Assembly (NCBI RefSeq): GCF_020745735.1
Contig: NC_083409.1
Coordinates: forward strand, 19,488,341 to 19,552,340
Reading direction: 5' to 3'
Source of the DNA: Hemiscyllium ocellatum
Lineage: Eukaryota
Length of the DNA stretch: 64,000 bases
Shown piece after piece: positions 2,575 to 52,053 of this stretch (within the stretch, counting starts at the first letter, position 1; each line of letters begins with the position of its first letter). The position numbers and the translations under genes are program-made. The notes under the pieces are model-generated. The model searched no databases, was not told where the DNA came from, and was given only the letters and a program-made list of their open reading frames with translations.

Positions 2575-3560
2575 ACATAGAGTCATAGTGTCAGAGAGAT
2601 GTACAGCACAGAAACAGACCCTTCTGTCCAACTCATCCATGCAGACCAGATAACCTAAATTAATCTAGTCTCATTTGTCAGCATTTGGCCCATATCCTTC
2701 TATACCCTTCCTATTCATATACACATCCAAATGCCTTTTAAATGTTAACATACCAGCCTCCACCACTTCCTCTGGCAGCTCATTCCAGAAATGTACCACC
2801 CTTGGCAGGAATAAGTTATGCCTTAGTTCCCATTTAAATCGTTCCCCTGATACTTTCCACCTATGCCCTCTAGTTCTGGACTCCTTCACTCTGACCAAAA
2901 TATCTTCTTGTTTCACTTGATCAATGCCCCTCATGATGTTAGAAACCTCGATATGGTCATCCCTCAGCTTCCAGTGATCCAGGGAAAATAGCCTCAGCCT
3001 ATTCAGCCTCTCCTGATCGCACAAATCCTCCAACTTGGCAACATCCTTGGAAATCTTTTCTGAACCATTTTAATGTTCCCAACATTTTTCCTACAGCAGG
3101 GACGCCAGAATTCCACACAGTATTCCAAAAGGGGCCAAACTGATGTCCTATACAGCTGCAACAGCTCCCAACTCCAATACGCAATGCATTGCCCAATAAA
3201 GGAAAGCACGGTGGCACAGTGGTTAGCACTGCTGCCTCACAGCGCCTGAGACCCGGGTTCAATTCCTGACTCAGACGACAGACTGTGTGGAGTTTGCACG
3301 TTCTCCCCGTGTCTGTGTGGGTTTCCTCCGGTTTCCTCCCACAGTCCAAAGATGTGCGGGTTAGGTGAATTGGCCATGCTAAATTGCCCGTAGTGTTAGG
3401 TAAGGGGTAAATGTAGGGGTATGGGTGGGTTGTGCTTCGGCGGGTCGTTGTGGACTTGTTGGGCCGAAGGGCCTGTTTCCACACTGTAAGTCTAGTCTAA
3501 TCTAATCTAATGCCAAATGACTTTGTCAACCCCCTACCTACCTGCAACTCCACTTTCAAG
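2575..3560 (-). mobile_element. CR1 LINE 3' part (RT C-terminus and 3' UTR), interrupted by a SINE
   Basis: Minus ORFs ERLNRLRLFSLDHWKLRDDHIEV and LYRTSVWPLLEYCVEFW match the CR1 RT tail. Confidence 0.8.
3209..3510 (+). mobile_element. Young HE1-like SINE, copy-1-specific insertion
   Basis: tRNA-like head and (TCTAA)n tail; the paralogous site GGAAAGCA|TGCCAAATGAC at ~43945-43963 lacks it; no clear TSD, 5' join via GCA microhomology. Confidence 0.9.
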
Positions 3561-4143: not shown

Positions 4144-4472
4144 TCCGTGAGAACTCACAGCCCAAGCTGACCCTGCTGCCCCCCTCCCCGGAGCAGGTCA
4201 ATGCCAAGGGCACTGCCACCCTGGTGTGCCTTGCCAATCACTTCTATCCCGATGAGCTGGAGGTGCAGTGGAAGAAGGACGGTGCAGTCATTTCGGACGG
4301 GGTTCAGACCAGCAACTACCTGCGAGCTTCGGACAGCACCTACAGCGTCAGCAGCCTGCTGACCCTCTCTGGGTCTGACTGGGAGTCGGATGCTCGCTTC
4401 TCCTGTGCCCTCACCCATGTGACCCTCCCCTCTCCCCTCAGCAAGAGCATCAGGAGATCAGAATGTGTGTAG
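4144..4472 (+). CDS. IGKC: Ig kappa (type III/NS4-like) light-chain constant exon, cluster 1; intact
   Basis: Acceptor TCTTGTCTTTCAG| at 4143, phase 1; RENSQPKLTLLPPSPEQVNAKGTATLVCLANHFYPDELEVQWKKDG...YSVSSLLTLSGSDWESDARFSCALTH...SECV*; C1-set Cys/Trp/Cys present; closely resembles nurse shark NS4 C. Confidence 0.96.
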
Positions 4473-15739: not shown

Positions 15740-17745
15740 CATACAGTGTAGAAGTTGGTCATTCAGCCCATCAAATCCACACCAACCCACAAAACAGCAT
15801 CCCATTTGGACTGACTCCATTCCTGTACTGCAGCATTTCCTATGGCCAACTCACCCGTCAACACTATGTGCAATTTAGCATGACTAATCCACGTAAACAA
15901 CATATCTATGGACTGTGTGGAAGAAGCCCACACAGACATGGTGAAAATGTGCAACCTCCACACAGACAGTTGTCCTAGCGTAGATTTGAACCCAGGTCTC
16001 TGGTGTTGGGAGGTAGCAGCACAAACCACTGACCCAGAATTCTGCCTTTTGCAAGCAGGTGGTGAGCTGCCTTCTTTAACCACTGCAGACCATGTGCTGT
16101 AGATAAACCCACAATGCTCTTCGGGAGGGAATTTCAGGATTTTAATCCAGTGACACTGGAGGAACAGTAAAATATTTTCAAATCAAGATTCTATGTGGAG
16201 AGGAACTTGTTTTTGGTCGTGTTCTGTGTCCTTCTACATGGAAATGATGTGGGTTTGGAAGGTACTGTCTCAAGAGACTTGGTGTGAATTCCTGCAGTGC
16301 ACCTTGTAGATGGTGCACACTGCTGTTACTGTGCATCAGTGGTGGAGGGAGTGGATGTTCATTGATGTGGTGCCAATCAAGCAGGCTGTTTTGTACTGGA
16401 AGATATCAAGCTTCTTGATTGTTTTTGGAGCTGCACCCATCCAGGCAAGTGGGGAGTAACCCATCACAGTCCTATCCAAAACTTGACTGATCTTTTCTTA
16501 ATTCATTTACTGGATCGGGCATCACTTGCTATGTCAGCATTCATTGCCCAGAATCAAGTGGGGTGGTACAGCACTGGGACCAAGGTTTAATTCCACCCTC
16601 GGGCAACTGACTGTGTGGAGTTTGCACGTTCTCCCTGTGTCTGCCTGGGTTCCCTCCCGGTGATCTGGTTTCCTCCCACAGTCCACAAACGTGATGATTA
16701 GGTGGAATGGTCATGGGAAATGCAAGGTTATAGGGGAGTGGGTCTGGTTGAGATGTTCTTTGGAGAAGCGGTTTGGGCTGATTGGCCTACTTCCACATTG
16801 TAGGGATACTATGAATTTCTTCACTCAGAGGGTTTTGAATCTTTGGGATAATCATCGATACTTAGGCATTTGAATAAATTCAAGATAGAGATAATACACA
16901 TGTGGGGAGGCAATGAGTTAATGGTATCATCATTAGATTCTTAATCACAAGAGCCAAGTAATGTTCTGGGGGATCTGGGATCATCGCGGGGCAGCATGGT
17001 GGTACAGTGGTTAGCACTGCTGCCTCACAGCACCAGAATCCCAGGTTCGACTTTAGCCTCGGGTGACTGCCTTTTATGGAGTTTGCACATTCTCCCTGTG
17101 TCTGCATGGGTTTCCTCCGGGTGCTCCGGTCTCCCCCACAATCCAAAGATGTGCAGGTTAGGTGAATTGGTCACGCTAAACTGTCACTAGTCAGGGTTGA
17201 ATATGGGGAATGAGTCTGGGTGGGTTACTCTTCGGAGGGTCGGTGTGCATTTGTTCGACAGAAGGGCCTGTTTACATACTGCAGGGAATCTAATCTAAAT
17301 CCTGGCAATGTGTGGAGTGGAATTTTAAATCCAAAAAGACTCTGGAGTTAAGAGTCTAATGACGACCATTGTTGGGGGAGAACCCCATCGGGCCCACTAA
17401 TATCCATCAGATTGCTGTCCTTGCCCATACTGACTGACATATGACTCCAGATCCACAGCAACATAGAATCATAGAATCCCTACTGTGTGGAAGAAGGCCA
17501 TTCAGCCCATCAAGTACAAGCAGCATCTCACCCAGAACCAGCCCCCTCTCCTAACCTTACACTTCCATGGCCAATCCAACTAACCTGCACATCTCTGGAC
17601 TGAGAGAGGAAACTGAGGCACCCGGAGGAAACCCATTCAGACACAGGGAGGACATACACATTCAACACAGACAGTTGTCTGAAGGTGGAATCAAACCCAG
17701 GACCCTGGCGCTGTGAGGTAGTGACACCAGCCACTGTGACACCCA
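15740..17745. mobile_element. Cluster of four HE1-like SINEs (~15740-16030 minus, ~16565-16810 plus, 16988-17300 plus, ~17470-17745 minus) nested in older repeats
   Basis: Each shows the HE1 head/body; 16988-17300 ends in a CTAAT tail. Confidence 0.8.
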
Positions 17746-27914: not shown

Positions 27915-28910
27915 GAATCATAGGTTCCATACAGTGTGAAACAGGCCATTCAACCCCATGAGTCCACACCAACATTCTGAGGAGCATCCCATTCAGATGT
28001 ATCCCTTTATCCCTGCATCTCCCATGGTTAATGCACCTAATCTACACATCCCTGAACACTATGGGTAATTTAGCATGACCAATCCATCTAGCTTGCACAT
28101 CTTTAAATTGTGGGAGGAAACCAAAGCACCTGTAGAAATCAGGTGAACGTGCAAACTCCACACAGACGGTCGCCCTAGAATGAATTAAACTCGGGATCCT
28201 GGCACTGAGAGGCAGCAGTGCTAACTACTAAGTCACAATACCACCCATTGCTGTGTGTCTGGAGTCACATTTAAGGCTGGGTAAGGATGACAGATTTTCT
28301 CCTCTAAAGGTTATTAGTGAACTGAATGAGTATTCTCCACAATCAACAATGGATTAATATCACCAATAGCTTCTTAATTCCAGAACCATTCTTGAATTCA
28401 AATTCCACTGTCTGCCATGGCAGGATTTGAACCCAGGTTCCCAGAACATTAGCTGAGTTTCTGGATTAATAGTCCAGCGATAATACCAATGGCCATTGTC
28501 TCCCCCTGTGTTAGCCTAGCTAATGGTGTCAAAATTGGCCTTCCCCCTGTTTTGACACTTAATTTCTGCTCTATCATTATCTCTTTACTTAACATAAGTA
28601 AAGGGTGACACAGTGGCTCAGTGGTTAGCACTGCTGCTTCACAGCGCCAGGGTCCCAGGTTTTATTCTGGCCTTGGCCAACTGTCTGTGTGGAGTTTGCA
28701 TGTTCTCCCCGTGTCTGCATAGGTTTTCTCTGGGTACTCCGGTCTCCTCCCACATTCCAAAGATGTGCAGGTCAGGTGAATAGCCCGTGTTAAATTGTCC
28801 ATGGTTGTTAGGTGCATTAGTCAGACGAGGGTGGGTTACTCTTTGGAGGGTTGGTGTGGACTTGTTGGGCTGAAGGGCCTGTTTCCACACTGTAGGGAAT
28901 CTAATCTAAT
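27915..28910. mobile_element. Two HE1-like SINEs (~27915-28250 minus; 28603-28910 plus)
   Basis: Head/body/tail similarity to the other copies. Confidence 0.82.
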
Positions 28911-34560: not shown

Positions 34561-35558
34561 ATGTCCTGGTCACCACATTCTCGGAAGGATGTGATTGTAC
34601 CTGAGAGGGTACAGGGGAGATTTCCCAGGATGCTGACTGAATCTGAGCTTTGAGAAAAGATTGGAAAGGTTGGGGTTGTTTTCCTTGGAGCAGTGACGGC
34701 TGAGATGGGACCTGATAGAGAGGGATAAGAATATTCGGAGCAGTGATAGGGTGGGTAGGAAGACACTTTTTGCATGAGACAAGGACTCAGTAACCTGGGA
34801 CAGAGATTGTAGGTAACACAGACATGGACACATAGAAACTGCTGCAGGAGTTGGCCATTCAGCCCTTTGAGCCTGTTCTGTCATTCAGTATGATCATGGC
34901 TGATCCTCTATCTCAAAGCCATATTCGTGCTTTCTCCCTATTCCCTTCATGCTGTTAAAATGCAAACAATTATCTCTCTCTTTTTCTTGAATATATTCAG
35001 TTCCTTATCCTCCACAGCCTTCAGTGAAGAGAATTCCACAGGTTGACCACCCTCTGAGTGAAGAAATGTTTCCTCATCTCAGTCCAAAAATGGACTACCC
35101 TGTATCCCCCTGAGACTGTGTCCCCTGGTTCCAGACTTCCCAACCAGGGGAAACCTCGTCCCTGCCCAGCCCTGTTAGAATTTTATACATCCATCTGAAT
35201 TCGAGTGAGTCCAAGCCCAGTCGAGTTCGAGAGAGAGAGGAGAATTGAGGAGAAATGTTTTCAACCAGAGGGTGGTGGGAGTCTGGAACTCACTGCCTGA
35301 AAGGCTGGTTGAGTCACAAACTCTCGTGACAGTGGAGCAGTGATTAGATATTCCCTTGTGTTGCTGCAGACTCCAGGATAATGGACCAAGAGCTGGAGGA
35401 TGAGATTAGTGTCATCAGATCTTTCTTTAACAGCACAGATACAATGGGCCAAATGGCCTCATTCAGTGCTGTTCACATCAATGATTCTCTGAGAGAGAGA
35501 GAGAGAGAGAGAGAAGAGGAAGTGTGAGGGACTGACATGGCCCTCCCTGCCTGATGCC

Positions 35559-35566
35559 ATTTACAT
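35559..35566 (+). promoter_or_regulatory. Ig promoter octamer variant ATTTACAT (consensus ATTTGCAT)
   Basis: Light-chain orientation, ~40 bp upstream of TATAAA and ~107 bp upstream of the ATG; one mismatch. Confidence 0.6.
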
Positions 35567-35606
35567 ACTGAGGAACACCCAGTCAGACTCTCACAGGCTG
35601 CAGCTT

Positions 35607-35612
35607 TATAAA
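35607..35612 (+). promoter_or_regulatory. TATA box of the Vk promoter
   Basis: CTTTATAAAGCAG ~60 bp upstream of the leader ATG. Confidence 0.7.
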
Positions 35613-35672
35613 GCAGAGCCCAGTGAAGGGAGAGTTTATTAGGAACCAGGCACAGGGACAGGAGCACACACC

Positions 35673-35721
35673 ATGATTTCACACATCCAGCTGATCTGGC
35701 CCCTGGCATTCTGTGTCGCAG
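35673..35721 (+). CDS. IGKV: Ig kappa leader exon (MISHIQLIWPLAFCVA/G)
   Basis: ATG in CACCATG context, hydrophobic leader, phase-1 donor G|GTACAA; intron 35722-35907 ends CCCTCAG. Confidence 0.92.
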
Positions 35722-35907
35722 GTACAAATCTCTCTCCTTCCACCTTGAATCTTTAGCTGCTCTCCATTTCACTCCAATTCCACTGACTTGTGATTGAAGG
35801 GAAAATGCTGAAACCAGAGGAATGCTCAGTGTCTCCAACAATCTCTCATTTGACAGGCTCTTTCTGTGACAGTTCTGACTTCACTGTGTTTCTCTCTGAT
35901 CCCTCAG

Positions 35908-36235
35908 GTATCAGTGGGGACATCACCATGACCCAGTCTCCTCCGGTGCTGTCAGTGGGACGGGGCCAGACCGCAACACTCACCTGTACGGCCAGTCAAA
36001 GCATTAGCAGCTCCCTTGATTGGTACCAACAACGAGAAGGTCAGAAGCCCTCTCTCCTGATCTATGCTGCATCAAATCGATTCACAGGAGTCTCCGATCG
36101 ATTCACCGGCAGTGGATCAGGGACCAGTTTTACCCTGAAAATCAGCAACGTTCAGAATGAAGATGTCGCTGACTATTACTGTATGCAGCGTAACAGCTGG
36201 CCTTACGTTCGGTAAAGGAACCAAGCTCAGACTGA
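35908..36235 (+). pseudogene. IGKV: Germline-joined Vk-Jk exon, out of frame at the junction (premature TAA 36213-36215)
   Basis: [13 protein letters not shown]...TC...WYQQ...[10 protein letters not shown] fused directly to a J reading ACG TTC GGT AAA GGA ACC AAG CTC AGA CTG A|GTAAGT ([10 protein letters not shown]) shifted by one base; no RSS or spacer between V and J. Confidence 0.93.
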
Positions 36236-36449
36236 GTAAGTAAACCTCAATCCAATGTTAGTAACCCTGTCAATACTGAAACACACTTTCTAAAACACAA
36301 ATGCTGAATTGTTGACGGTGTTAGTAGGGAGCTGCAGTGAATGAAATGGTTGATTGAAGAGCACTGTGTCTAACAGCGTATCCACCTGTATTTCTTTAGT
36401 TCCATTGCCCCCTTTAAAAGCAAGATATAAGTCAGTAAGTTTTACTCAC

Positions 36450-36607
36450 CGTGTGGAGGAGCTCTGTCCATTTGCAGCCTGTGGTCCCATTCCTGCAGCA
36501 TGGAGTGAAATCAGTGAGTAGCCTCCTGCCAGTCTCAGTGTGACGGACACGGGTAGAGTTTGATGTGAGCTCTGGCTCCCTGTCCCAGTCTCTGATCTCA
36601 CTGACCT

Positions 36608-36642
<35 letters not shown>

Positions 36643-36664
36643 CAGTGAGACACCGAGCTCCCAC
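36450..36664 (-). other. Candidate antisense first exon encoding a signal-peptide-like N-terminus (GTG start)
   Basis: gagGTGGGAGCTCGG gives (M)GARCLTV(L)11RSVRS-ETGTG...SSSTR, open for 71 codons and ending at a consensus donor CG|GTGAGT (36449-36444). Confidence 0.4.
36608..36640. repeat. (CAG)11 trinucleotide repeat in the J-C intron; reads as poly-Leu on the minus strand
   Basis: 33 nt perfect repeat. Confidence 0.95.
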
Positions 36665-37309
36665 CTCCCCAGCTTTAACTCTGCTCAATCACACAATCAG
36701 AGAATTGTTACAGTGCACAAGGAGGCCATTCTGTCCATCCTGTCTGTACTGGCTCTCCGAATGAGCAATTCACTGAGTGTCATTCTCCTGCCTTCTCCCT
36801 GTCACCTGCACATTGTTCCTTTTTGAATAATAGTCTCATTCCTTTTGGAATGTTTCAATTGAAGCTGCCTCCACCACACTCTCAGGCAGTGCATTCCACA
36901 CCTTAACCAAACACTACCTGAAAATGTTGTTCCCTATCTCACTTTTGTTACTTTTCCCAATTATTTTCAATCCATGGCCTCTCCCTCTCAATTATTTCTC
37001 AGTTGGGAACATTTTCTCCCTATTTACTGTGTCCAGGCCCCTCCTGGTTTTAATTCCTCGAACAAATCTCCTCTCAGCCTTCTCCAAAGAAGACAGTCCC
37101 AAATTCTCCAATCTCTCTTCATAACTGATGTTCCTCATCCCTGAAATGATCTTTGGGAATTTCTTTTGCCATTTCTACAAAACGTCACCTCCTTCCTGAT
37201 TTATTCACATTTTCTATGACCCTCATGATTTTATAAACCTCTGTAAGGTTTATAAGTCACTCCTCAGACTCTTACGCATCAGAGTAAAAAGTCTCAGCTT
37301 TTCCAGCGT

Positions 37310-39390
37310 CTTATAGTCATGGAGTCATACAGCGTGGAAACAGACCTTTCAGTCCAACTTGTCCGTGGTAACCAGATATCCTAAATGACCTCATCCTATT
37401 AACCAGCATTCGGCTTACATCCCTCAAAACCCTTCCTATCCGTGTACCCAACCCAATGTGTTTTAAATGCTGTAATTGTATCTGCCTCCAACACTTTCTC
37501 TGGCAACTCGATCCATACACATACCACCCTCTGTGTGACAAGTTACCGCTCAGATCCCTTTTGAATCTTTTGCCTCTCGCCTTAAACCTATGCCCTCTTG
37601 TTTTGGACTCCCTTTCCAAAGGAAAAGACCTTGGATATGCAACCTGTCCATGCCCCTCATGGTTTTATACACATCTATAAGGCCATCCCTCAGCCTTGAA
37701 TGCTGCAGGAAAAATAGCCACAGTTTCATCAGCCTTTCCCCGTAGCTCAAACCCTCAAATTCCAGGCCATGTCCTTGTAAATATTTCCTGCAGCTTTTTA
37801 AGTTTAACAACATCCTTCCTATCGCAGAATGATCAGAATTGTTCACATCATTCCCAAAGTGGCCTCACCAATCTCCTGTACAGCTGCACCATGATGTCCC
37901 AACTCCTGTACTCAATGCAGTGACCAATAAAGGCAAGCGTACCCAACACCTTCTTCATCACCCTGTCTACCTGTGACCCCACTTTCAAGGAATAATCCAC
38001 CTGCATCTTCACCCCTAGGTTTCTTTGTTCAGCAACACTCCACAGGGCCCTCCCATTAACTGTATAACTCCTGCCTTGGTTTGCCTTTCCAAAATGTAAC
38101 ATCTCGCATTTAACTAAACAGAACTCCATTTGCTACACCTCTGCCCATTGCCCCATCTGATCAAGATCCCGCTGTACCCTGAGATGAATTACTTCACTAT
38201 CCACTATCACGCCAATTTTGATGTCATCTACAAACTTACTGTAACTCCTATATTCACATCCAAATCATTTCTTTAAAAGACAAAAGCAGTGAACCCAGCA
38301 CCAATGCTTGTGGCACACAGCTATTCACAGATTTCCAGTCTGAAAAACAACCCTTTACCAACACTCTCTGTCTCCTATCTTCAATCCAATTTTTTTACCC
38401 CAATGGCTCACTCCCACTGGATCCCATGTGGTCTAACCTTGCGAACCAGTCTATCATGTGGAACTTTGTCAAACACTTTGCTAAAGTCCATATAGACAAT
38501 GTTTACTGCTCTGTCTTCATCAATCTTCTTTGTCACTTCCTCAATCAAATTCAGGAGACATGATTTTCTATGCATAAAACCACATTGATTATCCAAAGAA
38601 CGTAAATCCTAACCCACAGAATCCACTCCAACATCTTACCCAGCACTGACATCAGGCTCACTGGTTTATAGTTCCCTGGCTTTTCCTTACAGTCTTTCTC
38701 AAATAATGGCATAACATTATTCCCGCCTTAGGCAACCGACTGTGTGGAGTTTGCACATTCTCCCGGAGTCTGCTTGGGTTTCCTCCGGGTGCCCTGGTTT
38801 CCTCCCACAGTCAAAAAATGTGCAGGTTAGGTGAATTGGCCATGCTAAATTGCCCGTAGTGTTAGGTGCAGGGGTAAATGTAGGGGAATGGGTCTGGGAG
38901 GGTGTGCTTTGGGGGGTCGGTGTGGACTTGTTGGGCCAAAGGGCCTGTTTCCACACTGTAAGTAATCTAATCTAATCTAATCTAATCTAATTAGCCAACC
39001 TCTCTGGTTCTCTAGCACCTTACCCATGGTTGTCAGTAATACACATATCTCAGCAAGGGGCCCAGCAATCTCTTCCCTAGTTTCCCACACTGTTCTGGGA
39101 TACACATGATCAGGTCCTAGGGTTAATCTACCTTTATGTGTTTTAAGATCTTTTGCATCTCCTCATTTGTGTGTGGTCTCTTTTCAAGTCATCACTATTT
39201 TTACAAATTCCCTAGCTTTCTCCATAACAAATACTGACCTGAAATATTTGTTTGGGATCTCACCCACGTCTTGTGTCTTACCCAAATATAGCACTCACAT
39301 TTATCTGAATTAAACTCCATCTGCCATTCCTCAGCCCACTGGCCCAGTTGGTCAAGATTCCATTGTATTCTTAGACAGCCTTCTTCGCTG
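37310..39390 (-). mobile_element. CR1 ORF2/3' fragments in the J-C intron, with an HE1 SINE inserted at ~38720-38990 (plus)
   Basis: QCGFMHRKSCLLNLIE...VYMDFSKVFDKVPHDRL RT motif; CR1 3' tail at ~37310. Confidence 0.85.
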
Positions 39391-39397
39391 CCACTAA

Positions 39398-39706
39398 TTA
39401 GATTAGATTCTCTACAGTGTGGAAACAGGTCCTTCGGCCCAACAAGTCCACACCGATCCTCCGAAGAGTAACCCACCCGGACCTATTTCCCTCTCTGTAA
39501 ATCATCTAACACTATGGACAATTTAGCATGGACAATTCACCTGACCTGCACATCTTTGGACCATGGGAGGAAACCAGAGCACTCGGAGGAAACCCACGCA
39601 GACATAGGGAGAATGTGCAAACTCCACTCACCCAAGGCTGGAATTGAACCTGGGACCCTGGTACTGTGAGGCTGCAGTGCTAACCACTGAGCCACCGTGC
39701 TGCCCC
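39398..39706 (-). mobile_element. HE1-like SINE
   Basis: Head GGGGCAGCACGGTGGCTCAGTGGTTAG and (CTAAT)n tail. Confidence 0.88.
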
Positions 39707-40254
39707 ACCGGAACCATCACAAAGCCACCGATGCCTCCTGAAAATTCACCTGAACACACTCTCGCAACTCTGGCCCCTCTCTGCCCATTACACTGCTGCT
39801 ACCCCAAACTATATTCAGAAACTAAAGACCCCTATTCTCAACATTCTCATCAGGATTCTGAACTGAATCCTGGTTGGAGAGTGGGATGCACTCAGGGGAC
39901 TTTTGGACTGTCTGCTGCTTCCCCATTCCCTCTCTCCCTGCATATTCTGAAGCTGCAGAGTGACCACATCTAGAAACGTGCTCTCCACGGAGCTCTCAGC
40001 CTCACGGACGTTCCTCACTGACACCAACTGCTGCTCAAGCTCCGAAACCCGGAGTTCCAACTGCTGTCACTGACCTCACTTCTTGTACTCATGGTATTCC
40101 AGGACCGGGGAAACATTCTGAAGTTCCCACATGGATGCACACTCTTTCCACTCTTGGATTATCTCTTTGCAGAGTTCTGATGACAAACAGCTACAGCAGG
40201 GCTCACAGTCCAGTGGGTTCAGTGTTCCGGGGTTTTGGGGAAATTCTCCAGAAG

Positions 40255-40930
40255 ACTTTAAGTAATAGGCGCAGAAATCAGCCATTCAGCCTATGGAATC
40301 TGCTCTGCCATTTGACCTTGGCAGATATGCTTCTCACCCCCATTCTCCTGCCTACTCCACAGGAACATTCTATCCCCTTTACAAACATGAACCTATCTAT
40401 CTCTGTCTTTAATACACTCAGTGACTTGGCCTCCCTACCCTCTGTAACAATGAGTTCCACAGATTCACCACCCTCTGGCTGAAGAAATTCCTCCTCATTT
40501 CAGCTCGAAAGGGTCGGCCCTTCATTCTGAGGCTGTGCCTTGGTTACCTCGTCTCTCCTGTTTTTGGAAACATCTTCTCCACATCCACTCTATCCAGGCC
40601 TATCAGTATTCTGTAAATTTCAATAAGGTCCCTCCTCATGCTTCTAAACTCCATTGAGTACAGACCCAGAGTCCTCAACAATGCCTCATATGACAAACCC
40701 TTCATCCCCAGGATCATTCTTGTAAACCCCTCCAATGCCAGCACATTGTTTCTTACAATATGGATCCTAAATCTGCTCACAATATTCCAAATTCAGTCTG
40801 ACCAGAGCCTTACACAGCCTCAGCAGTACATCTCTGCCCTTGTATTCTGGCACTATTGAAATGAATGCAAACATTTCATTTTCCTTCCCAAGCACAAACT
40901 GCATCTGCCTGTTAACCTTAAGAGAAACCT
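40255..40930 (-). mobile_element. CR1 3' fragment
   Basis: GLSYEALLRTLGLYSMEFRSMRRDLIEIYRIL motif. Confidence 0.82.
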
Positions 40931-42838
40931 GAATAAGGTTTGTGCTTTAGATCTCCAAAGGCGTTCCTTATTTAGAAAATACCTCCACACCCTGACTCCA
41001 TTGGTGATGATCTTTCAGGAATCAATGTCCCCACAATCTCCTCGGTGATCTCCTTAAGAACACACTGGTGTAATTCATCCAGTCTGGGTGAGTTATCCAC
41101 ACTCAGACCTTCCAGCTTCCCCAGTACCTCCTCCTTAGTGATGGCCACTACACTCACCTCTGACCCCTGACAGTCTTGAAGTACTGGGACACTGCTGATG
41201 TTTTCCATTGTGCAGACTGATGTCATGTATGTATTCAATTCCTCGGCTTTTTCTTCATTTTCCTATTATTCTTTTTCCAATGTCTATTTCTGCCTCCCTC
41301 TTCCTTTTTATATATCTGATGAAACTCTTGCGATCTTCTTTTATATTACTGGTTCGCTTTCTCCCACATTTCACCTTCTGTCCCCTGAATGTTTTTTTTT
41401 AGTTATCCTCTACAAGTTTTTAAAAGACTTCCTAATCCTCTGGCTTCCCACTATTTTCCACCACATTGTATGCATTTTCCTTTTGTTTTTATGCTGTTCT
41501 TGACCTCCCTCATCAGCCATGGTTGCCTTGTCCACCCCTTAGTCTGTGCCTTCTTTTTCAGGATGAATTCCTGCTCTGCTTCCTGAATTACCCCCAGAAG
41601 CCCTGCTATTTGCTGCCCCACCATCTTACCTGCTCGGCTCCCTTTCCAATCAACTCTGGCCAGCTCCTTCCTCATGTCTTTGTCGTTCCCTTTACTCAAT
41701 TGAAATCTTGTTCCATCTGATTGCAGCTTCTCCCTCTCAAACTGCAGGGGGAATTCTATCGTATTATGGTCACTTATCCAGAGGGATACTTTCATTTTCA
41801 GCTCACTAACCAAGTTTGCCTCATTACCCATCACTGAATCCAAAACTGCCTGTTCCAAATGATCAACCACAAGCTGTTTCAAAAACCATCTCATAGACAT
41901 TCCATGAAATCCTTTTGTTGAGATGCTCTACCCAGTCCACCTATCCATTGAAGTCTGCATAACATTTTGTATTTGGCTTTTCTGTCTCCAGTTCCAAACT
42001 TCCAGCTCAGCACTGTCTCCATAACTTGTCCTACCTGCCTATCTTCTTTTGCACCTATCCACTCCACCCTCCCACCCCCTATTGTACTTAACTATTGTCC
42101 TCTATGCTACTTTGTCCGCAGCCCCACCCTCCTCTCATTTTTCTCTCCACCCTTCAGGCTGTCTGCCTTTATTCCTGATGAAGGGCTTTTACCTGAAATG
42201 TTGATTTTCCTGCTCCTCGGATGCTACCTCAACTGCTGTACCAATCCAGCACCACTCTAATCTAGAATCTGGTTTCCAGCATCTGCAGTCATTGTTTTTA
42301 CCCTTTTCTGTCTCCTGATTGATTTTCTTCCCCACACCCTGGTTACTGCTTGGAGACCTGAACATAACTTACATCAGATTCTTTATTTCTTGGGTTCCTC
42401 AACTCTGCCCACACAGATTCTACACCTTCTGACTGTATCATTTCTTGCTATTGATTTAAAGTCATTTCTTACTAACAAGCCAACTCTTCCCCCCTGCCCA
42501 TCTCCCTGTCCTTTTGATGGAAATGTATCCTTGGATATTTAGTTCCCAGCCCGGATCCCCTTACAGCCATGTCTCTGTGATACCCACAACATCGTACCTG
42601 CCAGTTTCAATCTGCACTACAAGCTCATTGTGTATATTGTGTGCATTTAAGTACAACACCCTCAGTCCTGCATTGACTGCCCTCCTTCCCATCATTGTCC
42701 TCTTATCTGCTGTGCTTTACGTTCGATACCTGATCCTTTCCACACTCTCTGTCCTTTTACATCTTCTAGAATCTTGAATAATCTCTCCAGAGCCCTCCTC
42801 CACTTTAACTAGTTTAAATTCCTTGGAAACTCAATTTA

Positions 42839-43003
42839 TAAGACCATAAGACATAGGAGTGGAAGTAAGGCCATTCGGCCCATCGAGTCCACTCCGCCAT
42901 TCACTCATGGCTGATGGGCATTTCAACTCCACTTACCAGCGTTCTCCCCGTAGCCCTTAATTCCTCGAGACAACAAGAATCTATCAATCTCGGCCTTGAA
43001 GAC
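42839..43003 (-). mobile_element. 165-bp 5'-truncated CR1 tail, copy-2-specific, 5-bp TSD ATTTA
   Basis: ATTTA at 42834-42838 and 43004-43008; empty site in copy 1 at ~2078-2082; same family as the 58122 element tail. Confidence 0.88.
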
Positions 43004-44591
43004 ATTTACCTGGATTTGTGACATCATTTTTCTCCCTTACTCGAAATGTTTCGTGCATTTAGACACAAAGTCTTTAAGTTTGATCTATTATTGATTTCCC
43101 TGCACTTTTATGATCCCTTTGATATTCAAAACTCCTGTCCCTTCCTTTTATTTTCTGGTAACAATCAATCCCATCACTAACTACAATCCTACCTTCTCCT
43201 TTCCCTTCCGTTTTCTCAATTTCCATCCAACTGAACCAAATTACTTTCTCTTTGGGTTGAGTTCAGGACAATATTTATCCTTGAACCAAAATCATGAAGA
43301 ATGCTCTTTGATCTCATTGCTTCCAGTGGGATCTTGCTGTGTAGAAATTGTCTGCCCATTCCTGAAATTGCAAAATTGACTGGTTTTCAAACAAAATGTA
43401 AATGTTTTGGGAGAGCCTGAGGTGCTGAGGGCTTGACTGAAACACAATTAGAGTCACAATTAGAAACAGACTCTTTGATCTGACTCATCCATGCCAGCCA
43501 CAGAGACATAGAGTCATAGAGTCAGAGAGATGTACTGCACAGAAACAGACCCTTCTGTCCAACTCATCTATGCCGACCAGATAAACTAAATTAATCTAGT
43601 CCCATTTGTCAGCATTTGGCCCATATCCTTCACTCTGAGCAAAATATCTTCTTGTTTCATTTGATCAATGCCCCTCATGATGTTAGAAACCTCGATATGG
43701 TCATCCCTCAGCCTCCAGCGATCCAGGGAAAATAGCCTCAGCCTATTCAGCCTCTCCTGATCGCACAAACCCTCCAACTTGGCAACATCCTTGGAAATCT
43801 TTTCTGAACCATTTTAATGTTCCCAACAATGTTCCTAAAGCAGGAAGGCCAGAATTCCACACAGTATTCCAAAAGGGGCCAAACTGATGTCCTGTACAGG
43901 TGCAACAGCTCCCAACTCCAATACTCAATGCATTGCCCAATAAAGGAAAGCATGCCAAATGACTTCGTCACCCCCCTACCTACCTGCAACTCCACTTTCA
44001 AGGAACTAATCTTTTTTGGGATGAATTGGGAGTCTTTCAGTTGTACTTTTCCTAAGCACCCTGTTCAGAAACAAACTTCTTGCTTTCACTCGCAACTAAA
44101 AATCAGATAAAGGAGGTGATGATTTAATGGTACTATTGCTGAGCTGTTCATCCAGAGATCCAGATTAATGTTCTGGGGGCCAGGGTTAGAATCCTGCCGC
44201 AGCAGATGGTGGAATGTGAATTCAATTTTTAAAATCTGCAATTAAGAGTCTAATGATGACCATGAAACAATTGTTGATTGTCAGGAAAAAAACATCTGAT
44301 TCCCTGATGTCCTTTAGGGAAGGAAACTGCCATCCTCACCATGTGACTCCAGACCCACAGCAATGTGGTTGACTCTAAATTGCCCTCTGGGTGATTAGGG
44401 ATGGGCAATGAATGCTGATCCTAGCAGTGACACTCACATCCCAAGAAGCAATTTGAACAATGCCTGTTCTTTACTGGGGTTTGTTAGGTATTGGCTACAA
44501 ATGTTCAAATGGATTGTCTTGCCAGTGAATGTTCAGAGAGTTAAAATCCCTTCGAATAACAGGGATTAAAATTGTTTCTCTTGTCTTTCAG

Positions 44592-44920
44592 GTGGTGACA
44601 ACTCTCAGCCCAAGCTGACCCTGCTGCCCCCCTCCCCGGAGCAGGTCAATGCCAAGGGCACTGCCACCCTGGTGTGCCTTGCCAATCACTTCTATCCCGA
44701 TGAGCTGGAGGTGCAGTGGAAGAAGGACGGTGCAGTCATTTCAGACGGGGTTCAGACCAGCAACTACCTGCGAGCTTCGGACAGCACCTACAGTGTCAGC
44801 AGCCTGCTGACCCTCTCTGGGTCTGACTGGGAGTCCGACGCTCGCTTCTCCTGTGCCCTCACCCACGTGACCCTCCCCTCTCCCCTCAGCAAGAGCATCA
44901 GGAGATCAGAATGTGTGTAG
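44592..44920 (+). CDS. IGKC: Ig kappa constant exon, cluster 2; intact
   Basis: Acceptor TCTTGTCTTTCAG| at 44591; with the J-terminal A it reads SGDNSQPKLTLLPPSPEQ...SECV*; identical to the Ck1 protein after the first three residues. Confidence 0.96.
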
Positions 44921-45672
44921 AGTATTGGAGACAGTCCACAGAGGAGACACAACTTTAAATAGAACAGGGCTGAGCTGGCAGGACAAAGGTCATTGTCAGC
45001 ACTGAATTTCAACTCTCTTCCTTCTCAGGACCGGCTCAGAGACATTTCTGAGGTTCAGGGGTTATGGCATGTCATTGGGACAGAGTAGACAGAGCTTTAC
45101 GCTGTGTCAAACCCCATGCTGTCCCTGTTCTGGGAGTGTTTGATGGGGACAGAGTTGACTTGAGATGCCAAGTAAAATCTCTTGAAGTTGCTAAAGAGCT
45201 GTACAAAGCAATGTGAACCTCAGAAGTCTCTGTTTCAGTAAACCAGATCTCCTTCCTGCTCAGTCGCCAGTTCCAATTTAAGGTTTTGTCACTGTTTGAA
45301 GGGACAGGGTTCTCGTGCTATTGAGAAAACCTCCACAAGTGTTTTCCTCAAGCTCCATTGTGGCTGTGAATTTGAGCAGCTTCCTCTGTCTGGGCTGTTA
45401 ATTGCTGACTGTTTTCTGTCAATGTCAATCTGGAAAAGGGAATAAAGATGAAGAAGATTCAGTCTCTGTGTCTGTGTGCTTTGGAGATTGACCACTCCAT
45501 TCAGCTGATTGGCTACATTTCAGCATGGCATTGTCACAATTGGCTATTCGCCTGTCAATCAATAACACATCCGTTGTAGAGGATACTGACAGCCAATCAT
45601 CAATCACTTTCAAATGATCCCTTTGATCTGGAATCATTGGAGGTTACAAGATTCCAAACAGATTTCCATTAA

Positions 45673-46885
45673 TGACCACCTGGACCATCTCTGACACCTC
45701 CCTCCCCTTCCTGGACCACTCCATCTCCATTAATGATGACCCACTTGACACTGACATTTTTTACAAATCTACCGACACCGAGGGTTCCACCTCTTCCCAA
45801 CCTACCTCCTGCAAAAATGCCATCCCGTATTCCCAATTCCTCCGCCTCCACCATATTTGCTCCCAGGAGGACCAGTTTCACCACAGAACCACACCACCAC
45901 ACCAGATGGCATCCTTCTTTAGTGACCACAATTTCCCTTCCCACGTGGTCAAAGATGCGCTCCAACGCATCTCGTCCACATCCGACCCCTCGGCCCTCAA
46001 GCCCCACCCCTCCAACTGTAACAAGGACAGAATCACCCTGGTGCTCACCTTCCACCCTACCAACCTTTGCATAAACCACATCATTCGACGACATTTCCGC
46101 CACCTCCAAACGGACTCCACCACCAGGGATATATTTCCCTCCCCACCCATTCCTGCTTTCCTCAAAGACCGTTTCCTCCATGACTACCTGGTCAGGTCCA
46201 CGTCCCCCAACAACCCACCCTCCCTTCCTGACACCCTCCCCTGCCACCGCAGGAATTGCAAAACCTCTGCCCACACCTCCTCCCTCACCTCCATCTAAGG
46301 CCCCAAAAGAGCCTTCCACACCCATCAAATTTTTATCAGCACATCCATCAATATCATTTATTGTATCCGTTGCACCCGAGGCAGTCTCCTCCATATTGGG
46401 GAGACTGGACACCTCCTTGCAGAGCGCTTTAGGGAACATCTCTGGGACAAGCACACCAATCAACCCCACTGCCCTGTGGCCCAAGATTTCACCTCCCCCT
46501 CCCACTCTGCCGAGGACATGCAAGTCCTAGGCCTCCTCCACCGCCGCTCCCTCAACACCCAACATCTAGAGGAAGAACACCTCATCTTCCGCCTCTGAAC
46601 ACTTCAATCCCATGGCATCAATGTGGATTTCACCAGCTTCCTCATTTCCCCTTCCCCCACCTCACCCCAGCTCCAATGTTCCAGCCTCAGCACCATCCTC
46701 ATGACCTGTCCTACCTGCTTATCTTCCTTTCCACCTATCCACTCCACCCTCCTCTCTGACCTATCACCTCCATCCCCACCCCATTCACCTATTGTACTCT
46801 ATGCTACTTTCTCCCCAACCCCCTCACATTTATCTCTCCACTCTGCAGGCACCCTACTTCTATTCCTGATGAAGGGATTTTGCCC
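45673..46885 (+). mobile_element. Penelope-like element (paralog of 5233-6540), truncated inside its pLTR
   Basis: ORF 45672-46298 (TWTISDTSLPFLDHSISI...KNAIPYSQFLRL) and downstream GIY-YIG text. Confidence 0.88.
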
Positions 46886-48940: not shown

Positions 48941-49548
48941 GATAAAAAAATGAGGTCTGCAGATGCTGGAGATCACAGTTGAAAATGCGTTGCTGGTTAA
49001 AGCACAGCAGGTCAGACAGCATCCAAGGAATAGGAAATTCGACGTTTCGGGCATAAGCCCTTCATCAGGAATGAGGAGAGGGTGGCAGGCAGGTTAAGAT
49101 AAAAGGTACGGAGGAGGGACTTGGGGGAGGGGACCTGGGGGGTGCAGTGAGAGAGAGAGACTCACTGAAATCCTTGTAGAGGGAGGAAGAGAGCTTCTTC
49201 AAGGAAGGCATCCTTGCAAGAGGATTCGCAGAAGGTTAAAATCTTCGGGTAAAAAATGAGGTCTGCAGATGCTGGAGATCACAGTTGAAAATGCGTTATC
49301 TGCAGACCTCATTTTTTACCCGAAGATTTTAACCTTCTGCGAATCCTCTTGCAAGGATGCCTTCCTTGAAGAAGCTCTCTTCCTCCCTCTACAAGGATTT
49401 CAGTGAGTCTCTCTCTCACTGCACCCCCCAGGTCCCCTCCCCCAAGTCCCTCCTCCCTACCTTTTATCTTAACCTGCCTGCCACCCTCTCCTCATTCCTG
49501 ATGAAGGGCTTATGCCCGAAACGTCGAATTTCCTATTCCTTGGGTGCC
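48941..49548. mobile_element. Young Penelope-derived insertion: tandem pLTR repeat plus ~250-bp inversion, flanked by a perfect 15-bp TSD
   Basis: TCACTCACTTGCACA at 48926-48940 and 49549-49563; arms 49019-49270 and 49298-49547. Confidence 0.92.
49494..49529 (+). ncRNA. Minimal type-I hammerhead ribozyme motif in a Penelope pLTR (antisense twin at 49037-49072)
   Basis: ATTC-CTGATGA-A-GGGC-TTAT-GCCC-GAAA-CGTC-GAAT: helix I ATTC/GAAT, core CUGAUGA, helix II GGGC/GCCC, GAAA, palindromic ACGU and GUC triplet. Confidence 0.75.
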
Positions 49549-50542: not shown

Positions 50543-50854
50543 TTAGATTAGATTAGATTAGACACAGTGTGGAAACAGGCCCTTCGGCCCAATAAGTCCA
50601 CACCGACCCGCCGAAGCGCAACCCACCCATAGCCTTACATTTACCCCTTACCTAACACTACGGGCAATTTAGCATGGCCAATTCATGACCCGCACATCTT
50701 TGTGACTGTGGGAGGAAACCGGAGCATCCGGAGGAAACCCACGCAGACACAGGGATATGCAAACTCCACACAGTCAGTCGCCTGAGTCGGGAATTGAACC
50801 CAGGTCTCTGGTGCTGTGAGGCAGCAGTGCTAACCACTGTGCCACCGTGCCGCC
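50543..50854 (-). mobile_element. Young HE1-like SINE with 6-bp TSD CAGGTT
   Basis: CAGGTT at 50537-50542 and 50855-50860; near-identical to 795-1110. Confidence 0.92.
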
Positions 50855-52053
50855 CAGGTTGTGAACTATCAAATAATTTGACAAGGATGTATTAATAAAA
50901 GAGCAGATTAGTATGAAAAAAAAGTGTACATGGTTTTCATGGATTTTCAGAAATTATTTCAAGTTGCCTCTGAGACGACCAATGGCAAAATTCAAAAACA
51001 CCTCAAACGAAGGGGAGCACAGTCAAATGGATAGAGGTAGTTGGGAAAATGCAAGGTTCGGGTAAAATAAAGATTTCACATGAGAAAGGTGGGGAGAATG
51101 GAAGGGGCCCACAGGAGCCCATGCTCAGATTGCCCTTAATTGTTATAGTAATAAACACAATCTTGACTTGGGAATTTAAGAGAAGGAAACTAAATGATTC
51201 CAACTTGGGTTGAAGGGACAGAGATGGAATTGTACTGCAGTGACAGATACAGAAGAACATTTTCCGGAAGATGGAACTGAAGTTGAGAGTGAGATGAAGT
51301 AATACTTTAAGTGGATAAGAAATGGAATTACACCTGAAATGGTAAGATCCTAATCAGACCAGAGAAAAAGGCCACAAAGTATTCAAACATACAGGCCATT
51401 TAAAGTGACAGATACAGCCATTTAAAAAAAAACCTGACACTTCCAACTGCACACAAACAATTTAAGCCACATTAAGTTGCATAAGATCTTAGAATATTTT
51501 GGTCAATTTTGGGAACCTCCACACAGCACAAATTCAGACTGAAAAGTGCAAACTTTGAGGCTTTCTTGGTCTGAAAATTATGGAGTGACCTGTGGAAGAT
51601 AAGATTCTGGAGAGTTTTAAGAAGATGATTAATAATCATATAGTGTATTACCAACCAATGGAAAGACAGATGATACAAAAGAATTCAAAAAAATGAGTGA
51701 CTGGAAGAGACACTAGATATTATGTAAATAGAAACAGAATCTATAGATTCTCGGAGTTGGCAAAGTTGTGACAGATGGGATTTAGTGAATAACAGGATGA
51801 GGAGGAGGTTGATGATGATAAATTAACAATGGGAGAGTACAAACAGTGGAGGAGAAAGGGGCTTTGGATTTTTAGGGAAGGGGCAAAATGGTAAATTGAA
51901 TTCAAAGCTGTCATCAGGATCGAGATCATATGCATAACAGAGCATGTTAAAAACATCATCAATCAGAGGTGCTGTGGAGCACTATTAACCCATATCTTTC
52001 TTGCTTAATTGAGAAAAAATAATTTTGTGTTCAAACGCAAAAGCTACATTCAC

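Follow-up and report, generated by a model that had tools for sequence, protein, structure and literature searches.

The 64,000-nucleotide stretch of Hemiscyllium ocellatum DNA analysed here (the window) contains a complete kappa-type (NS4/type III) light-chain cluster at 35559-44920, in which V and J are already fused in the assembled genome. The reading frame at the joint is one base off in the assembled sequence. Because V and J are out of step, the gene is unable to make a light chain. We consider it probable that this is a hemiscylliid NS4 cluster that was joined by germ-line V(D)J-type (RAG) recombination, that the join was dead on arrival, and that it is young. The sequence itself shows the anatomy of the gene, its collinearity with split genes, the absence of RSSs, and the constraint on its C exon.

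Anatomy of the joined cluster

The elements of the gene all lie on the forward strand. An octamer-like motif (ATTTACAT, 35559-35566) and a TATAAA (35607-35612) form the promoter. The leader exon (35673-35721) encodes MISHIQLIWPLAFCVA and the first base of a Gly codon and ends at a GT donor at 35722; the leaders of the H. ocellatum proteins P0016 and P0096 are identical to it. A leader intron of 186 bp (35722-35907, GT…AG) separates it from the fused VJ exon (35908-36235), in which a whole V-kappa domain runs straight into J. The V-kappa part (35908-36204), assigned by its V-set match and by homology to split loci, extends from FR1 to CDR3 and ends in …AGC TGG CCT T. It has kept Cys23 (TGT within 35979-35990), Trp41 (36021), and YYC (36174-36182), and its translation was scored as V-set by Pfam with an E value of 1e-17. 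The J-kappa part (36205-36235), assigned by homology to the J side of split loci, gives 10 residues in the J frame followed by A|GTAAGT, with the GTAAGT donor at 36236. The J-C intron (36236-44591) is 8.36 kb long and carries repeat insertions. It is followed by an intact C-kappa exon (44592-44920) with an AG acceptor and a TAG stop, whose product is GDNSQPKL…RSECV. This exon was scored as C1-set by Pfam (E 1e-22), and it is in the correct phase and free of defects. Downstream of V there are thus one J and one C1-set C exon, in the same orientation and with phase 1 splicing. The gene spans 9248 bp in the window, as compared with 9235 bp for P0016, another joined gene of H. ocellatum.

The coding joint, TGGCCT-T-ACGTTCGG (36198-36215), contains three bases (CTT, 36202-36204) that can be assigned to either V or J. 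It reads TGG CCT T ACG TTC GGT, which in the V frame is translated as W P Y V R and then stops at TAA (36213-36215). Across the leader, V, J, C, and the splice sites, the frame at the joint is the sole lesion. Direct reading therefore agreed with the first-pass annotation, made from the sequence alone, which had described the leader, the splice sites, both Cys, Trp, and the J motif as intact and the joint, with its V-frame stop at 36213, as the only defect. Frame rescue by splicing was considered and rejected, since the exon already contains the TAA upstream of the J donor.

When the entire 64 kb was scanned for patterns, no 12-RSS, no 23-RSS, and no second J core were detected, in line with the earlier statement that neither RSS nor spacer is present between V and J. 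When a copy of the V-J spacer re-inserted nearby, a possibility raised by Lee et al. (PMC2193156), was sought across the 64 kb, none was found, and the matches were (GA)n/(GT)n microsatellites only.

Two kinds of repeated sequence were also noted in the window. A repeat of ~310 bp occurs in both orientations with 78-93% identity (792-1109, 3206-3510, 16989-17298, 28609-28910, 39397-39705, and 50546-50855) and is probably a SINE-like element. A region of ~530 bp (49019-49547) matches its own reverse complement at 95%, forming a long palindrome or hairpin.

Comparison with split clusters and composition of the coding joint

The joined cluster was compared with six unrearranged clusters (L001-L006) from a fragmented assembly of the bamboo shark Chiloscyllium punctatum, a genus different from that of the window. 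The window V is 83-85% identical to the V genes of C. punctatum. On the V side, 35400-36204 aligned at 87-92% with the promoter, leader, intron, and V of the six split clusters. The region from 35400 onward aligned at 90% or more with L002, L003, and L005, and the homology extended up to 36204 in L001, L002, L004, and L006. The Chiloscyllium models P0015, P0019, and P0020 also run through this upstream sequence (…IYILRNTQSDSHRLQLYKAEPSEG). On the J side, 36202/36205-36699 aligned at 85-92% with J and the J-C intron of the six clusters. The heptamer-to-heptamer spacer measures 408-681 bp in these clusters, and the window lacks exactly this RSS-bounded segment. In each of the six, the borders read V|CACAGTG-12-ACAAAAACC and GGTTTTTGT-23-CACTGTG|J, a kappa-type arrangement. 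It is not visible in the window itself because the RSSs are gone. Since the flanks align with nothing between them, the deletion ends within a few bases of both heptamer/coding borders. Judged from these alignments, collinear flanks together with deletion ends at the RSS/coding borders are the signature of V(D)J-type recombination. The pre-joined kappa VJ recognized in the first-pass annotation is thus confirmed by the collinearity of both flanks with unrearranged clusters. That annotation had proposed an alignment to unrearranged clusters of the same species; those used here, which gave both the collinearity and a templated joint, are from C. punctatum.

Other origins of the fused exon were considered. 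A retrocopy was ruled out because the promoter and both introns are retained. A random deletion does not leave its ends at both heptamer borders with the promoter and introns kept. A more specific possibility is that the spacer was lost independently of RAG, through replication slippage or end joining between short CTT repeats, and a 3-nt direct repeat may indeed flank the deleted segment. However, both ends lie 2-5 nt from the heptamer borders of a spacer of 0.4-0.7 kb, for which random chance is ~1e-4, and the same precise excision recurs in nurse shark. We assign this possibility the lowest probability of all the alternatives weighed here.

Two further features of the J-C intron were noted during the comparison. 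A minus-strand ORF at 36446-36688, ~200 bp past J, encodes a poly-Leu run derived from a CAG/CTG repeat. Alignment of this region to L001, L003, and L006 extends to 36699, so that the family has conserved it within the J-C intron. A lone heptamer, CACTGTG (36362-36368), is located ~125 bp downstream of J within a 22-nt motif that is common to the window and L001, L004, L005, and L006. No nonamer was seen beside this heptamer. It recalls the intronic recombining heptamer of mammalian kappa loci.

The composition of the joint was examined against the coding ends of the six relatives. In 6/6, 27 nt separate the Cys codon from the V coding end, which reads CCTTGA or CCTTGG in 5/6 and CCTCGA in L005. 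The J starts found are GGACACG, GTTCACG, GCATACG, GCTTACG, and GCTTCCG, which follow the pattern G(CTT/CAT/GAC/TTC)ACG/CCG TTCGG. From these V ends and J starts, which belong to another genus, the window joint TGGCCTTACGTTCGG would be fully templated, without N or P bases. It can be read as V minus 2 plus J minus 4, or as equivalent splits. The N-nucleotide-free join proposed earlier is therefore upheld: no N bases are needed, and each base has its counterpart in a V end or J start of the relatives. A J of the TAC ACG type that had lost AC was also considered as the origin of the joint, and is unneeded given the J starts GCTTACG and GCATACG in the relatives.

The extent to which V and J overlap at the joint varies with the type of J. 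The overlap is 3 nt (CTT, 36202-36204) with a J of the L004 or L005 type, the former being GCTTACG and the latter also beginning with GCTT; it is 1 nt with the L003 type (GCATACG) and 0 nt with L001, L002, and L006. In the H. ocellatum proteins P0031 and P0096, the heptamer is followed by L-T-F-G. By the usual formula for chance overlap, at least 1 nt is expected in ~44% of joins and at least 3 nt in ~5%. Since the overlap is 0-3 nt depending on the type of the ancestral J, the microhomology idea is plausible rather than demonstrated, and a microhomology-guided join, if real, would have used CTT rather than CT. Thus, of the 2-nt CT microhomology suggested in the first-pass annotation, the possibility of an overlap stands, but its size hangs on the ancestral J (3, 1, or 0 nt). 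Fetal or TdT-deficient mouse lymphocytes make coding joints that lack N bases and are directed by short homology. The window joint resembles them in being fully templated with a possible overlap of 1-3 nt; the mouse joints are somatic, whereas the overlap in the window hangs on an unobserved ancestor.

An untrimmed join is +1 out of frame, since V at full length finishes a codon and J at full length brings one extra base. Since a net loss of 6 nt preserves this phase, the join was most likely dead on arrival. In other words, it would have been non-productive from the moment of its formation, and not inactivated by a later frameshift. This is favoured because it takes one event, while the alternative takes an in-frame join and then a deletion that happens to fall at the joint of an otherwise untouched gene. 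In that alternative, the original join was in frame (for example …CCT CTT ACG…, with a 9-residue CDR3) and gave a working light chain, which was lost by a 2-nt slippage deletion in CTCT. Such a product is reachable, as V ends CCT|TGA and J starts G|CTTACG occur in the relatives; the segments needed for the in-frame product imagined in the first-pass annotation do exist in L004 and L005 of Chiloscyllium. In addition, of the six nurse shark genes that are joined, four are in frame, and the constraint on the C exon described below fits a gene that worked until recently. However, the first lesion in ~700 nt of coding and splice sequence must then have struck the 2-4 nt of the joint, and no further lesion marks a period of decay. 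Most joins (2 in 3) are out of frame from the outset, and P0016, which is out of frame in the other phase, indicates that the kappa family does produce out-of-frame joins. The later slippage raised in the first-pass annotation is thus very unlikely, because the first lesion of a ~700-nt gene would need to land exactly on the joint.

It was also considered whether the frame at the joint is a consensus or polishing error, the true sequence being in frame and the shift an artefact that arose among the many copies of the family. Ig clusters can be mis-polished by reads from paralogues, but CCTTACG is neither a homopolymer nor a long repeat, and the error would need to strike the joint exactly. Out-of-frame joins are the expected majority, and an independent annotated paralogue, P0016, is out of frame as well. 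An error of this kind is less likely still than the in-frame origin. If the assembly had captured a B-cell clone with a somatic, non-inherited rearrangement, a joint such as this one, which resembles any lymphocyte coding joint, would likewise be expected. To win the consensus, however, one cluster among dozens must have been rearranged in most of the sequenced cells. The joint also lacks N additions, which according to Lee et al. (PMC2193156) are what most obviously sets somatic NS4 cDNA apart from germline-joined genes. We therefore regard somatic rearrangement as even less probable than a consensus error, and only the RAG-independent deletion ranks below it.

In the scheme that we prefer, V(D)J-type (RAG) recombination in an ancestor's germ line would have joined a single V to a single J, and the RSS-flanked spacer of ~0.4-0.7 kb would have been cut out. 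The coding ends would have lost 6 nt in total and been ligated without added bases, possibly via the short CTT overlap. This loss would have kept the +1 phase and brought in the TAA three codons past the joint, making the gene non-productive from the start. The join would be younger than the duplication behind the two clusters in the window. We infer both the RAG mechanism and the germ-line origin from the features above, taking the ancestral V end and J start of the window cluster from another genus.

Age of the join and related genes in the same species

The window contains two clusters, as 1-6422 matches 41067-46873 at ~92-93%. This match places a sister C exon at 4144-4472, and the VJ of the first cluster lies upstream of the window start. 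Two copies of the ~310 bp repeat are insertions specific to cluster 1 relative to cluster 2. The C exons at 4144-4472 and 44592-44920 differ by six synonymous and two replacement substitutions (pS 0.075, pN 0.008). Both replacements are located in two linker codons (RE vs GD), and the Ig domains are identical, with a pN of 0. The flanks of the two C exons have diverged by 6.3% and 7.4%. Gene conversion was rejected as the cause of the identical C proteins, since pS is close to the flank divergence (0.063-0.074). If cluster 2 had drifted since the duplication, ~9 replacements would be expected, and the Poisson probability of two or fewer is 0.0055 or less. These sequence differences indicate that the C exons are kept under purifying selection. 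A neighbouring observation on the C exon, made earlier, was thus borne out by pN/pS against the sister exon. Since the C exon is still constrained and there is no other damage, the inactivation is young relative to the cluster duplication. On the ordinary account, a recent bad join ended the function of a gene that had until then worked in split form. The constraint might alternatively reflect some continuing use of the C exon.

Two proteins of H. ocellatum annotated as 'immunoglobulin kappa light chain-like', P0016 and P0096, are close relatives of the window gene. Their V differs from that of the window at 4/115 residues, all of which are in CDR2 or CDR3. The tail of P0096, including the linker GDNSQPKL, equals the product of the window C exon, and the C region of P0016 is identical too. 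The P0016 protein (…YYCMQHSSWP-LRSVKEP…) is a V fused to a J that is read in the wrong frame. As deduced from the protein, its joint would be one base longer than that of the window (W-P-L-R-S-V-K-E-P) and so in the other wrong phase. In the public gene model of P0016, a 12-residue mini-exon taken from the J-C intron (equivalent to 36399-36434 of the window) restores the C frame. This mini-exon is most likely an annotation artefact that hides a pseudogene. Its equivalent in the window lies downstream of the stop and therefore does not rescue the frame.

P0096 reads through a 23-RSS (…PLHWELSLW) into 12 further residues, and its gene is 518 bp longer than that of P0016. Because its V and C are identical to those of P0016, the RSS is read through, and the gene is longer, P0096 is the split form that corresponds to P0016. 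Since joining is irreversible, the P0016 join is later than the separation of P0016 from the V lineage of the window. On the basis of four CDR residues at the protein level, it follows that the two joins are independent. The protein comparison suggests that the P0016 join was a separate, later event, its closest relative being the split P0096. P0016 is on a 116-Mb chromosome and P0096 is on an unplaced 72-kb scaffold, with V (115 aa) and C identical between the two. In the reference animal, they may represent a joined and a split allele of a single locus. If they are allelic, a germline join would have been caught here before fixation.

Three proteins labelled in public records as Salmonella enterica and Aeromonas veronii (P0012, P0117, and P0123) share 68-80% identity with the V or C region of shark kappa. 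Their contigs measure 299-990 bp, and they appear to be vertebrate sequence that has contaminated bacterial assemblies.

Germline-joined light-chain genes in sharks and skate

The presence of germline-joined NS4/kappa VJ in sharks, to which the first-pass annotation referred, has already been described. Lee, Fitch, Flajnik & Hsu (J Exp Med 2000, PMC2193156) used erythrocyte DNA of nurse shark to clone six NS4 genes joined in the germline. Four of them (R4, R7, R18, and RE18) are in frame and two (R6 and R19) are pseudogenes, and in R19 one base must leave CDR3 to give the frame (PMC2193156). The joins were present in several animals, at least five independent joins were inferred, and the joints had ends that were trimmed, perhaps some P bases, and scant indication of TdT (PMC2193156). 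The nurse shark NS4 genes and the window gene share the isotype, the cluster layout, and a leader intron of 186 bp (PMC2193156). The window gene is related to the nurse shark NS4 cDNA P0017, and the NS4 C region of nurse shark differs from that of the window at 8/106 residues. Digestion of nurse shark NS4 genes with PstI gives fragments of 727-754 bp from joined genes, as both predicted and observed by Lee et al., and ~1,200 bp from split genes (PMC2193156). The PstI sites at 35598 and 36332 of the window would yield a 734-bp fragment, inside the joined-gene range of Lee et al.

As in the joined NS4 genes of nurse shark, the RSSs and the spacer are fully excised in the window, the ends are trimmed, and there is little or no N addition. 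R19 is like the window gene in that its CDR3 is one base out of frame. However, R19 also has stop codons and R6 has many disruptions, whereas the window gene is damaged at the joint only. The species and the locus differ, and the germline origin of the nurse shark joins was shown by Southern blots of erythrocyte DNA from several sharks, while that of the window join is presumed. The age of the R4 join was estimated at 0-7 Myr (PMC2193156), and the youth of the window join relative to the duplication is consistent with such recent joining in nurse shark.

Whole families of germline-joined light-chain genes are described for skate, sandbar shark, and nurse shark NS3 (Anderson et al. 1995, PMC2192082; cited in PMC2193156). 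These families share with the window gene V-J fusion within V-J-C clusters, and in them the fused genes are inherited DNA. There, entire isotypes are joined, in frame, and expressed, whereas the window gene is one dead copy in a family that is mostly split.

The class of fused genes, dead ones included, has thus been known in nurse shark since 2000, and the window gene is a further and cleaner example in another orectolobiform. Its integrity outside the joint, its templated joint, and its constrained C exon would date it as a recent, dead-on-arrival product of germ-cell V(D)J recombination. A broader reading, which we put forward only tentatively, is that RAG activity is ongoing in the germ line of this shark lineage and that the kappa clusters keep an unselected record of it. 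The window join might then be very young, perhaps polymorphic, and one of many independent joins of which ~2/3 would be out of frame. The study of 2000 could only sample germ-line joins by cloning. A census of all such clusters in this chromosome-level genome, recording frame, trimming, overlap, and age, would measure the frequency and the mode of germ-line RAG activity.
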